Shown: piece after piece, positions 2,201 through 8,021 of the stretch
Layout: each line of letters starts with the position of its first letter
Position numbering within the stretch: the first letter of the stretch is position 1
Source of the DNA: Dimorphilus gyrociliatus
Taxonomy: Eukaryota > Animalia > Annelida
Length of the DNA stretch: 64,000 nt
NCBI GenBank assembly: GCA_904063045.1
Contig: CAJFCJ010000009.1
Coordinates: forward strand, 848,942 to 912,941
Direction of reading: 5' to 3'
Made by a program: the position numbers and the translations under genes
The notes under the pieces: model-generated
Told to the model about the DNA's origin: nothing
What the model saw: only the letters and a program-made list of their open reading frames with translations
The model's database searches: none

Positions 2201-5119
2201 ATGTGGTCGTTGTTCACAAGAGATCCTTTGAAAGAGTTTGCCTATGAAGTTGAACAGGAGCTTCCTGGTATAGAAAATCGAAGCGATTGGCAGTTTTGCC
2301 TGGGAAAACATAAGGTGCGTAATATCTTTATTTTAGAGTATTAAACGACATCTTTCGAATATTTTTAGACGACAGGAAGTCCAGTGACAATACTAAAATT
2401 TCCAATAGCCGAACGAAATGAGGCGCAAAAGAAGCGGGCCAAAAACTATTTTAAAACTCTTAAAACCATGAAACACCCTAATATTCTAACGTATATTGAT
2501 GGTATAGAGGTTTGTGTTTTCTTGAAAATTTCCTCTGCATTGTTTTAAAAACAATCTCTTATTATAGACTGAAAAAGAGATGCTTTTAGTAACTGAATAT
2601 TCCACACCTTTAAAAGTGTACCTTCAAGACGAAATTGAACGTGGACCTAGAAGAGAAATGGCAATATCCTGGGGATTACACCAGATATCTGTATGTACAC
2701 ATACTCGATCTTGATTGTTTTAAATACGTGATTTAACGATGAACAGAAAGGACTCTCATTTCTCAACAAAGATTGTAATCTTGTACACAATAACATATGT
2801 ATCTCATCAGTATTTGTTACTGAAAATGGGGAATGGAAACTAGCTGGATTCGAATATATTTACTCAGCAAAAGAAAACGTTGACTATGGTCCAAGGTTGT
2901 CAAGCTTAGCTGCGTACGAGCCTCCAGAAGGATTTTCAGGAGTAAGACCTCCGAAAGCCAAACTGTATGTAATTGAAATTATAGATGTTCGTTAATATTA
3001 CGAATATTTTTAACATCTTCCAGGGCTATTGATAGCTGGGGTTTGGGATGCCTAATTTGGGAATGTTATAATACACCCATAACCAGATCTAACCAGTTGA
3101 AAGATACTCATGAGGTTTGTCTATCCTTTGAAGACAATACAATATCGAATTATCCTCAATGTACAGTAATGAAAATTTGTCTTATTTTTAGATTCCTAAG
3201 TCATTGTTACCAGTTTATATAGAGCTGCTAAGCACAAACGTAAAAATCAGGCCCACATCATTAAAATTTATTGAATTGTGTAGAAAAAATAGATGTTACA
3301 TGGATAATAAGTTTGTGGATTGCATGCTCTTTTTGGAAGAAATTCAAGTAAGTATTTTTCAAGAGAATTAGTCATGAATTATTTTATCTTTCACTGTACT
3401 AATATACTCTTTCTTATTCTATTAAGATTAAAGAAGAGTTGGAAAAGAATAATTTCTTTTCAAGCCTCTCATCAGTTATAGATTCTTTTCCAAAAAGAGC
3501 CTGTACGAAAAGAATCTTACCTCAACTGCTGAACGCTTTTGATTTTAGTAATATAGGCTCTGCTATATTACCTCCTCTATTCAAAATAGGAGGATTATTA
3601 GAGACAGAGGATTATCAGAAATATATTGTTCCATGTATTGTCAAGCTGTTTTCATCCACAGGTTTATTTCATCTTATACCTTGAATATTTGTTTTGTTAA
3701 AAGTTTTTTATTATTTACAGATAGAGCAACTCGAGTGAAACTATTACAGGAAATGGAGACATTTTGCCAACACTTATCAGCTGATATAGTTAACTCAAAA
3801 ATCTTTCCTAATGTTGTTAATGGTTTTGTAGATACAAATCCAGTTGTTAGGGAAAATACTATCAAAGCAATGATTCATTTATCTCCTAAACTTAACTATA
3901 AAAACCTTAATGAAGAGCTCATGAAACATTTTGCTCGCTTGCAAAGTAAGGATGACCAGGGTGGTATTCGTACTAATACAACAGTCTGTCTTGGAAAAAT
4001 TGCTTGTCATCTTGATCCGAGAAATCGACAAAAGATTCTAATTTCTGCTTATACAAGAGCATTAAAAGATCCATTTCCTCCAGCAAGGCAAGCTGGAGTT
4101 TTGGCCATAGCTGCAAGTCATCATTTATTTACTCTAGCTGAAAGTGCTCATCGTTTACTTCCCTGTCTATCGCCTTTAACTTTAGACCTTGATAAAAATG
4201 TAAGAGACCAAGCTTTCCGCGCCATGAAATGTTTTCTAGGCAAATTGGAAAAAGTATCCGAGGATCCAGATTCTATAACAGAAATGGAAAAAGACGTCAA
4301 TGTTGGAGGTGTTACTAGAGGTTCTTCTGCTGCTGCTTCTTGGGCCGGTTGGGCTGTCAGTGGAATGTCCACATTAACACATAAACTTTATAAAAACAAT
4401 AAAGATCGAACTCCTCCGAAGAAGACGACGGTTAATAAACCCAAGTCACCAGAGGCCTCTAGACAACCTGACAACACTTCTGAAACCAGAACTGAAACTA
4501 CGACACCAGAGAATGTAAGCGATGATGAAAGCGAGTGTGGATGGGATAAGGTAGAAAATTGGGGAAATATGAATGACAGTACAGAGGACACTGAAAATAC
4601 TAACTCAAAGGACGGATGGGACGATGAAGAATGGGGAGATATGGATGAAACTGCTAATGATGGTAACGATTCTTTCGTAGAAACAGAGGGAAATCATAAT
4701 ACAGTTTCTTCATATAACTGGGGACAAGACGTTAATAATGATGATTTCTTCAACTCCCTTGTCTCCAAAGATAAAGTCAGTTACTTTATGCTTTAGTATA
4801 TATCAAAGAAACTAATCTGTATAATATTTTAGCCAAAAAAGACCTTATCAAAGTCAACTCCAGCAACTAATACAGAGAAAACTTCATGGGAAAGCAACTC
4901 TTGGGATACCGAGAATTGGGACCCAATTGAAGAACCTCGTAAGTTGAATTGAACTGAATAAGATTTGAAACTCGACTAAATATTTTCCTAATAGCTGCAG
5001 ATGACCATAAAAAGAAAATGATAGAAAAACAAGCCGAGAGGAAGAGGCAGATTGAACAAAAAAGAGCAGCTAGGCAGGCATCCGGTGCAATGAAATTGGG
5101 CAGCAAAAAATTGACATAG
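2201..5119 (+). CDS. SCYL1: N-terminal kinase-like protein SCY1-like 1 (pseudokinase plus HEAT repeats); multi-exon
   Basis: Starts MWSLFTRDPLKEF. HEAT region contains DDQGGIRTNTTVCLGKIA and ALKDPFPPARQAGV. An acidic tail is followed by the C-terminal COPI-binding-like MKLGSKKLT*. Introns are ~50-60 nt. Confidence 0.95.
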
Positions 5120-5159
5120 GATATATCATTTGTTTCTGATATAATTAAAAACTTCTGAT

Positions 5160-5411
5160 TTATTTCGAACTATTACAACGTTTTTCAAGCTCTTTTATCT
5201 TTTTATCTACTTCACACATAACTTGATCTTTATTGGCTCGAAAGAATATGTTTGATTCTTTTTTATATACTTTGGCGTCCTTCTTCAGAGTGCTCAACTC
5301 AAACCTTAAAACCTATGGAAAGTGGTACATACTTTGTAATACAAATGGTATTTTAAAAAGTTTAATGACCTTAGTATCTTCCAAATCCCTTGCCTCTTCT
5401 ACTTTTTCCAT
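5160..5411 (-). CDS. ASDURF-like small prefoldin-beta-type protein (64 aa, 2 exons; intron 5313-5369)
   Basis: Spliced translation MEKVEEARDLEDTK|VLRFELSTLKKDAKVYKKESNIFFRANKDQVMCEVDKKIKELEKRCNSSK* resembles human ASDURF as I recall it ([26 protein letters not shown]...ELKK). Not in the ORF track. Confidence 0.7.
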
Positions 5412-5859
5412 AGCGTTTTTCTGAAATTTCCACTGTATCCGAAATTTTTTCCTCTGGTTTAGCTTCAAGCTCAAAGACTTCTTTATTTAATAGCTTCGTC
5501 TGATCTTGCAGAATGCGAATTATATCTATCGATAAAAAATACTTATTATCATTAAATAACCGTTAAAGAAAAAAATATATACAATCCCTGGAATCCTTTT
5601 TTTGATCAATTAATTTAGATAGCCGTAGTGCAGTTTGTTCTGGAGGTTCTATTTGGTCTCCAGTAGTGTTAAAGTAATTTTTGCGAAATTCTTCGTCTTC
5701 GTTCCTCTGTAGTCGTTGATAGAATTATGGGTCAATAAGTTAGTTATCTCTAAAATCTCTTACATTTTGTATTTCTTTAATCTCTATCAACAGACGAGAT
5801 ATTTTTTGCATATAATATTCCCTTTCCGTTGCAGCTTCAATTTGTACTTCAGTAGACAT
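5371..5859 (-). CDS. Uncharacterised coiled-coil protein (124 aa, 3 exons; introns 5707-5763 and 5526-5582); overlaps the ASDURF-like ORF by 41 nt
   Basis: Two 57-nt GT-AG introns join an open frame, MSTEVQIEAATEREYYMQKISRLLIEIKEIQN|RNEDEEFRKNY...|YIIRILQDQTKLLNKEVFELEAK...GKGFGRY*. No family recognised. Confidence 0.7.
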
Positions 5860-6422
5860 AACAGTGAAAATTAATGTCAACCTTAACTGGAATAAATAAG
5901 TACATTCAATATTTGGAGAGGCGTTAGCAGTAATCTTTTTTAAGTCACGTTCGCTTTGAACAATCTCTCATTTCAACAAGATCATTAAAATCGAAAACAA
6001 GAATGTAATTTTTTCAAACTCAGGCTCAGAAATTAATATAAAGTAGTATATAAGCGATTGTTGAATGGATAAAATACCATCTTCAGATATATAACAGATC
6101 ACATAGAAGTTTAAGAAATTAATTACAGACCTTTTAAGTCCGTTACGAAACTTCCTTTGCATTACGGACTGGCTAAATTCCGCGTGTAATTATAGAGGGC
6201 TGTCGTGTTAGACTTAAATGTGTTAAGTGTGATTTTGATGTACTGAAAATCAACATTTTTTTGAAAATTACAATTTTTTTATTTTTTCAAAGCTTTTTTT
6301 AAGGGCACAAATTGCTAGAGCAATTCTCAGACAAAATACCCTAGGCAAAAGTTTAACTTATGTTGCAACAGGGTGTCCGACTTTATCTGCCACTAAATTA
6401 AACTAACAGGATTATAGTTATG

Positions 6423-8021
<1,599 letters not shown>

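Follow-up and report, generated by a model that had tools for sequence, protein, structure and literature searches.

The locus studied here raises the question of whether a single mRNA of the annelid Dimorphilus gyrociliatus encodes two proteins, one of them a small prefoldin-like protein of the ASDURF type. The pairing of ASDURF with ASNSD1 is a textbook case of an animal mRNA that encodes two proteins, and the literature that we searched contained no description of the ASDURF arrangement in invertebrates. A sequence-only reading of the window (the whole stretch of 64,000 nucleotides that was analysed) had proposed a two-ORF unit, in which an orphan coiled-coil ORF of 124 amino acids (here ORF1) overlaps the start of a 64-amino-acid ORF resembling ASDURF (here ORF2). 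On balance, we consider it probable that this is a real two-protein locus, with one spliced transcript that encodes the orphan ORF1 together with an overlapping, minimal beta-prefoldin of the ASDURF type. The arrangement is known from a single species, D. gyrociliatus.

The coordinates given here are positions in the window, and the locus is read on the minus strand. Exon 1 (5764..5886) follows an AG acceptor at 5888-5887 and holds both ATGs of ORF1, the first at 5859 and the second, in frame, at 5811. Exon 2 (5583..5706) is 124 nt long and contains no ATG in any frame. ORF1 ends in exon 3 (5370..5525), where the first 14 codons of ORF2 are also found, and exon 4 (5140..5312) provides the other 50 codons of ORF2 and has a predicted 3' end near 5140. 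ORF1 (5371..5859) occupies exons 1 to 3, running from the ATG at 5859-5857 to the TAA at 5373-5371, and a single base, G 5370, separates its stop codon from the GT donor at 5369. ORF2 (5160..5411) opens in exon 3 with the ATG at 5411-5409, in the +1 frame relative to ORF1. Translated exon by exon, it comprises 14 codons up to 5370 and 50 codons in 5312-5163, followed by the TAA at 5162-5160, which is overlapped by an AATAAA at 5164-5159. Positions 5371..5411 (41 nt) are shared by the two frames. Reading of the minus strand and translation of the exons reproduced exactly what had been claimed from the letters, namely, a 124-amino-acid ORF that stops at a TAA one base before a donor, and an ATG in the +1 frame, 41 nt upstream of that stop, that opens a 64-amino-acid ORF crossing the last intron. 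As a separate observation, a single base separates the ORF1 stop from the last exon junction (5373-5369), and by the 50-nt rule termination there would not trigger exon-junction-dependent decay.

Three introns separate these exons (intron 1, 5707..5763; intron 2, 5526..5582; intron 3, 5313..5369). All are of the GT..AG type, each is exactly 57 nt long, as the sequence-only reading had stated, and all three are spliced out in RNA-derived contigs. We regard the equal lengths as unremarkable, because the median intron of the species is 66 bp according to the D. gyrociliatus genome paper and an adjacent intron on the plus strand is 56 nt long. The latter (4939-4994, GT..AG) belongs to a SCY1-like gene and is spliced in X2 and X4, two of the four public runs, X1 to X4, that were aligned on window positions 4850-6420.

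Three of these runs (X1, X2, and X3) are metatranscriptomes that contain sequence 90-99% identical to the locus. The library type of X4 is not recorded; the run must derive from RNA, because it yields a contig of 7,522 nt that is 100% identical to the window and lacks the introns of genes on both strands. This contig joins 5310|5368, 5525|5583, and 5706|5764 and so contains exons 1-4 in one assembled transcript. The removal of intron 3, on which the proposal of an intron-crossing ORF2 depended, is seen in X1 and X3 as well as in X4. The joint across intron 1 is present in X4, and so is the joint across intron 2; loose ends add the joining of exons 1 and 2 and of exons 2 and 3 in X3 and the joining of exons 2 and 3 in X2. 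The proposal that one mRNA holds both ORFs is borne out by the single spliced, fully identical X4 contig that carries all four exons, a contig being an assembly and not a single molecule. One spliced transcript, made up of a leader and exons 1-4, carries two overlapping reading frames. Both frames share the mature transcript, and the ORF2 start sits within the exon that ends ORF1. Independently of this question, the presence of such similar transcripts in marine and other metatranscriptomes indicates that close relatives or strains have been sampled in environmental RNA, possibly providing comparative data.

The same runs bear on the possibility that the locus encodes a single fusion protein. 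Such a protein could arise through a splice from 5763 to 5420, by which exon 1 would be joined to an internal tttcag acceptor and a product of 99 amino acids would result, or through a +1 frameshift at the ORF1 stop (UAC UAA G). Both variants are compatible with the reading frames, and 99 amino acids is near the 96 of human ASDURF. However, the 5763->5420 joint, which the sequence-only reading had offered as an alternative, is absent from all four runs, and the corresponding intron would measure 343 nt, compared to the median of 66 bp, and would end behind a purine-rich acceptor context. As for the frameshift, no signal for it is evident, and its product would exchange the prefoldin N-terminal helix for the basic, disordered tail of ORF1. 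We consider a fusion protein very improbable. Spliced-leader trans-splicing at the internal tttcag (5427-5421) was also considered as a candidate and rejected, since the D. gyrociliatus genome paper, which describes a very compact genome with short regulatory regions, finds neither operons nor spliced-leader trans-splicing; the transcript is therefore not cut up by a spliced leader.

The leader exon (6131..6170) ends at a GT donor (6130-6129) and is joined to the rest of the transcript in two ways. In X4, and also in X3 with one substitution nearby, it is spliced from 6131 to 5886, i.e., to exon 1, 27 nt upstream of the ORF1 ATG. In a single 151-nt contig from X2, it is spliced from 6131 to 5706, so that the leader is followed directly by exon 2. 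This contig matches the window without a difference over its 35 leader letters and departs from it 3 times within its 112 exon-2 letters; it comes from the metatranscriptome of a 97%-identical relative, and the joint of leader to exon 2 is not seen in X4. In a close relative, then, at least a fraction of the molecules lacks exon 1. The 5' end of the leader is placed only by prediction, based on a TATA-like TATAA at 6194-6190 and an Inr-like CCAGTCC at 6172-6166, and the X2 contig reaches 6165. Together, the TATA-like box at 6194 and the Inr-like element at 6172 suggest that the locus has a promoter of its own, about 230 nt past the stop codon of the upstream Rpt3-like gene. That gene has its stop at 6425-6423 and an AATAAA at 6283. 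An X4 unitig with a depth of 1133 extends unbroken over 6131-6425 on the minus strand, from the 3' end of the Rpt3-like gene to the leader donor at 6131, and transcripts may read through from Rpt3 into the locus.

Is the upstream frame a gene? ORF1 corresponds to the annotated D. gyrociliatus protein DgyrCDS7388 (CAD5118706.1), the full 124-residue sequence of which equals the three translated exons, and the assembly annotates exactly the interval from the ATG at 5859 to the TAA at 5371. The suggestion that it is an orphan agrees with all of our searches. When its last 50 residues were used in an exhaustive HMMER search, the only hits were the identical 124-amino-acid protein, which is ORF1 itself, and one bacterial cadherin-repeat protein, a match that we rejected as chance similarity to a repeated motif. 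A word search with the full-length protein and searches of Pfam, PDB sequences, and the ESM Atlas recovered no relatives; a match to the Med15 KIX domain (E 0.007) was attributed to chance. Scans of metagenome contigs with both proteins of the locus were blank. In the structure predicted by AlphaFold from the single sequence (pLDDT 66, pTM 0.27), residues 3-44 and 54-94 are helical and the basic tail is disordered. Fold searches with this model matched nothing more specific than generic single-helix coiled coils, with every Z below 6. We regard it as nearly established that ORF1 encodes a lineage-restricted protein, predicted to be a coiled coil that forms a helical hairpin.

A frame of this kind could also be something other than a gene. 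It is conceivable that ORF2 alone is functional and that ORF1 is a long overlapping uORF that throttles ASDURF output, the peptide itself having no function and having been annotated merely as the longest ORF. This would fit with the failure of every search to find a relative, the generic character of the fold matches, and the weak structural model. It would also fit with the tail of ORF1, where substitutions are mostly non-synonymous and the last 13 codons read like those of ORF2 off-frame. However, a frame of 124 codons that remains open across two splice junctions at 35% G+C is very unlikely to persist without selection, and only 1 of 20,000 shuffles of ORF1 was free of in-frame stops. Codon usage favours the ORF1 frame by 43.9 bits overall, a value to be compared with 51 +/- 14 for chunks of the same length taken from the window's clear coding ORFs, and the first 111 codons by themselves favour it by 37.8 bits. 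In addition, 8 of the 14 substitutions found in ORF1 in the close relatives sampled by X1-X3 are synonymous in its own frame, whereas reading in the two alternative frames gives 4 and 3, a statistically modest excess (binomial P 0.06). By these measures ORF1 looks like coding sequence, and we consider it unlikely that it acts solely as a regulatory uORF. Where the two frames overlap (41 nt), it is the ORF2 frame that codon usage favours, and X1-X3 list no substitution in this segment.

ORF2 is missing from the gene table of the assembly. Its length, below 100 amino acids, makes it a microprotein, and its translation contains the motif ELS.LKK..KVY...SNIFF.A that had been noticed from the letters. 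We take this hairpin motif to be common to human ASDURF and ORF2, and treat it as a lead. The resemblance to prefoldin and ASDURF put forward in the sequence-only reading was recovered, close to threshold, with the exon-4 part of the protein (50 of its 64 amino acids), which served as the query for Pfam and phmmer. This peptide matches the Pfam family PF21975 (ASNSD1-SEP) with 26.2 bits (E 9.1e-6) over positions 40-82 of the 96-position profile, and PF01920 (Prefoldin_2) with 26.1 bits (E 8.8e-6). These scores fall 1 bit and 1.5 bits below the curated cut-offs of 27 and 27.6, respectively, with a tie between the ASDURF model and the generic prefoldin model. The C terminus of ORF2 stops about 9 positions before the end of the ASDURF profile and about 21 before that of Prefoldin_2. 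With phmmer, the same peptide finds the archaeal prefoldin beta subunits 1fxk, 2zqm, and 2zdi (E 5e-4 to 1e-3), and the matches span the hairpin region. An AlphaFold model of the isolated 50-residue piece, computed without an alignment, shows a helix-turn-helix with no strands or beta hairpin, and we regard it as uninformative.

We must consider whether these matches could reflect a chance ORF or a decaying fragment of a prefoldin that has no function. Both Pfam scores are slightly below the curated cut-offs, and a word search with the exon-4 peptide gave zero candidates among small proteins of 27-87 amino acids, a range in which ASDURFs of about 96 amino acids are invisible. However, two independent libraries, Pfam and the PDB, agree on the same 41-44 residues. 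In the relatives, 5 of the 6 substitutions in the exon-4 part of ORF2 fall at third codon positions, and 4 of the 6 are synonymous (P 0.10). Furthermore, the start codon is in a strong context, and the intron is crossed with the frame intact. We give the notion of a nonfunctional ORF2 very little credence and take ORF2 to be a genuine microprotein of the beta-prefoldin type and most likely the worm's ASDURF, with the tie between the two Pfam models as a caveat. By homology, its place would be in the prefoldin-like part of the R2TP/PAQosome chaperone, where ASDURF assembles with URI1, UXT, PDRG1, PFDN2, and PFDN6.

We infer that both ORFs are translated, and the positions of the start codons suggest how ribosomes could reach the second. 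On the full mRNA, ATGs are encountered at 6162, 5859, 5811 (in the ORF1 frame), and 5411; on the mRNA that lacks exon 1, they are encountered at 6162 and 5411. The ATG in the leader (6160..6162) opens a uORF. On the full mRNA it has 11 codons, with a stop that ends at 5883, 21 nt before the ORF1 ATG, and on the exon-1-skipped mRNA it has 29 codons, with a stop that ends at 5649, about 180 nt upstream of 5411. This ATG is probably within about 10 nt of the predicted cap site and, if the cap is near 6170, is probably too close to it for efficient use. The context of the ORF1 ATG (G at -3, T at +4) includes a purine at -3 and so does not mark it as an obviously leaky start; the ATG at 5411 has G at both -3 and +4. 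Between 5811 and 5411, a distance of about 290 nt in the mRNA, there is no ATG in any frame. After the ORF1 start, a single ATG is observed, compared to 5.0 expected from dinucleotide shuffles (P 0.01); the scarcity has a P of 0.016 when codon order is shuffled and of 0.10 when synonymous codons are resampled.

Two routes to ORF2 could be envisaged. By the first, an isoform would join the leader to exon 2 and thereby lose exon 1 together with both ATGs of ORF1, so that 5411 would become the first ATG after the cap-proximal, 29-codon leader uORF. By the second, some ribosomes on the full mRNA would scan past the ATGs of ORF1 and initiate at 5411, aided by the ATG-free stretch from 5811 to 5411 and by the good context of the ATG at its end. 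Exon skipping and leaky scanning could coexist, and we do not rank them firmly.

These routes would be unnecessary if the locus produced two monocistronic mRNAs, with a second promoter in intron 2 or exon 3 giving rise to a short mRNA for ORF2 and the long mRNA serving ORF1 only. Contigs do not show where transcripts start, so that a start within exon 2 or exon 3 may escape them, and short regulatory regions in a very compact genome would make an internal promoter easier to accommodate. However, none of the contigs ends or branches there, and the joints between exons 2 and 3 and between exons 3 and 4 occur in the same records. Exon 3 provides just 114 nt upstream of the ATG at 5411, and the scarcity of ATGs across exons 2 and 3 would be unexplained if this sequence were never scanned toward ORF2. 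We therefore consider two separate mRNAs rather improbable, and continue to favor a shared transcript from which both proteins may be translated.

The gene with which ASDURF is classically paired does not appear at this locus. As the sequence-only reading had supposed, ASNSD1 has no counterpart nearby: it is neither on the transcript nor among the neighboring genes, and no Asn_synthase domain occurs in 10 large ORFs scanned elsewhere in the 64-kb window. The transcript ends just after ORF2 (AATAAA at 5164). Upstream lies the gene for the Rpt3-like proteasome ATPase; downstream is that for a convergent SCY1-like kinase, and TyrRS is a further neighbor. At 5117-5175, the 3' ends of the convergent genes overlap on the two strands, the SCY1-like gene on the plus strand having its stop at 5117-5119 and an ATTAAA at 5144, and X4 and X1 contain transcript contigs that extend over both the SCY1-like gene and the ORF2 locus.

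Comparison with known systems shows which features of this locus are familiar. Human ASDURF, also called ASNSD1-uORF (UniProt L0R819), is the twelfth subunit of the PAQosome. Like ORF2, with its match to PF21975, it is a small beta-prefoldin-like protein, and both are encoded by spliced ORFs on an mRNA that holds a second, unrelated ORF. The two differ in that human ASDURF has 96 amino acids in four exons and lies upstream of ASNSD1, whereas ORF2 has 64 amino acids in two exons and lies downstream of its partner. Placement upstream of ASNSD1 is the vertebrate arrangement and is not universal; ORF2 does not share it. ORF2 shares 41 nt with its partner, read in a different frame, and that partner, unlike ASNSD1, has no known relatives. 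In humans, the ASDURF and ASNSD1 reading frames are not known to overlap.

Lack of an ASNSD1 partner is not new in itself, because the ASDURF of Arabidopsis (At1g49245), whose membership in the prefoldin-like complex is supported by AP-MS, is encoded by a stand-alone gene. ORF2 resembles At1g49245 as a prefoldin-like subunit of the ASDURF type encoded without ASNSD1, and differs from it in sharing an mRNA with another ORF and in being known here from sequence. The archaeal prefoldin beta subunits (1fxk, 2zqm, and 2zdi) align with residues 5-45 of the exon-4 peptide over a segment that begins late in helix 1, includes the hairpin, and extends into helix 2, with 1fxk giving the lowest E value (5e-4). 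They have 107-117 amino acids and long coiled-coil arms, whereas the arms of ORF2 have only about 22 residues each.

Overlapping frames on one mRNA also have a precedent. MOCS2A and MOCS2B are encoded by an overlapping bicistronic gene in different frames, and the choice of first exon sets the first usable start; the two products are subunits of one enzyme and are widely conserved. The D. gyrociliatus locus is similar in having two overlapping frames on one gene and, possibly, in that exon use sets which ORF has the first usable start. It differs from MOCS2 in that ORF1 and ORF2 have no known link and in that ORF1 has no known relatives.

A broader interpretation would be that ASDURF has twice become part of an mRNA encoding two proteins, once in the vertebrate ASDURF-ASNSD1 pair and once, independently, here, where it is the downstream and overlapping cistron of a young, lineage-specific gene, with a splicing switch, the inclusion or omission of exon 1, that chooses the protein. 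We advance this tentatively, as a possibility that may well prove to be wrong. Should both ORFs be translated, two animal lineages that are far apart would each encode the same microprotein on a shared mRNA, but its partner would differ between them and the order of the two ORFs would be reversed. It would then become testable whether ASDURF tends toward co-encoding, e.g., for dosage control, or whether its repeated occurrence in such a position is an accident. An exon 1 that can be skipped and that holds all of the ORF1 starts would make this locus a compact and tractable case of splicing-controlled choice between overlapping frames. For D. gyrociliatus itself, annotation by the longest ORF chose the frame without relatives and hid the conserved one, and with ORF2 the gene set of this annelid, whose compact genome serves as a reference, gains a candidate for a PAQosome/prefoldin-like subunit that had been missing and unannotated.
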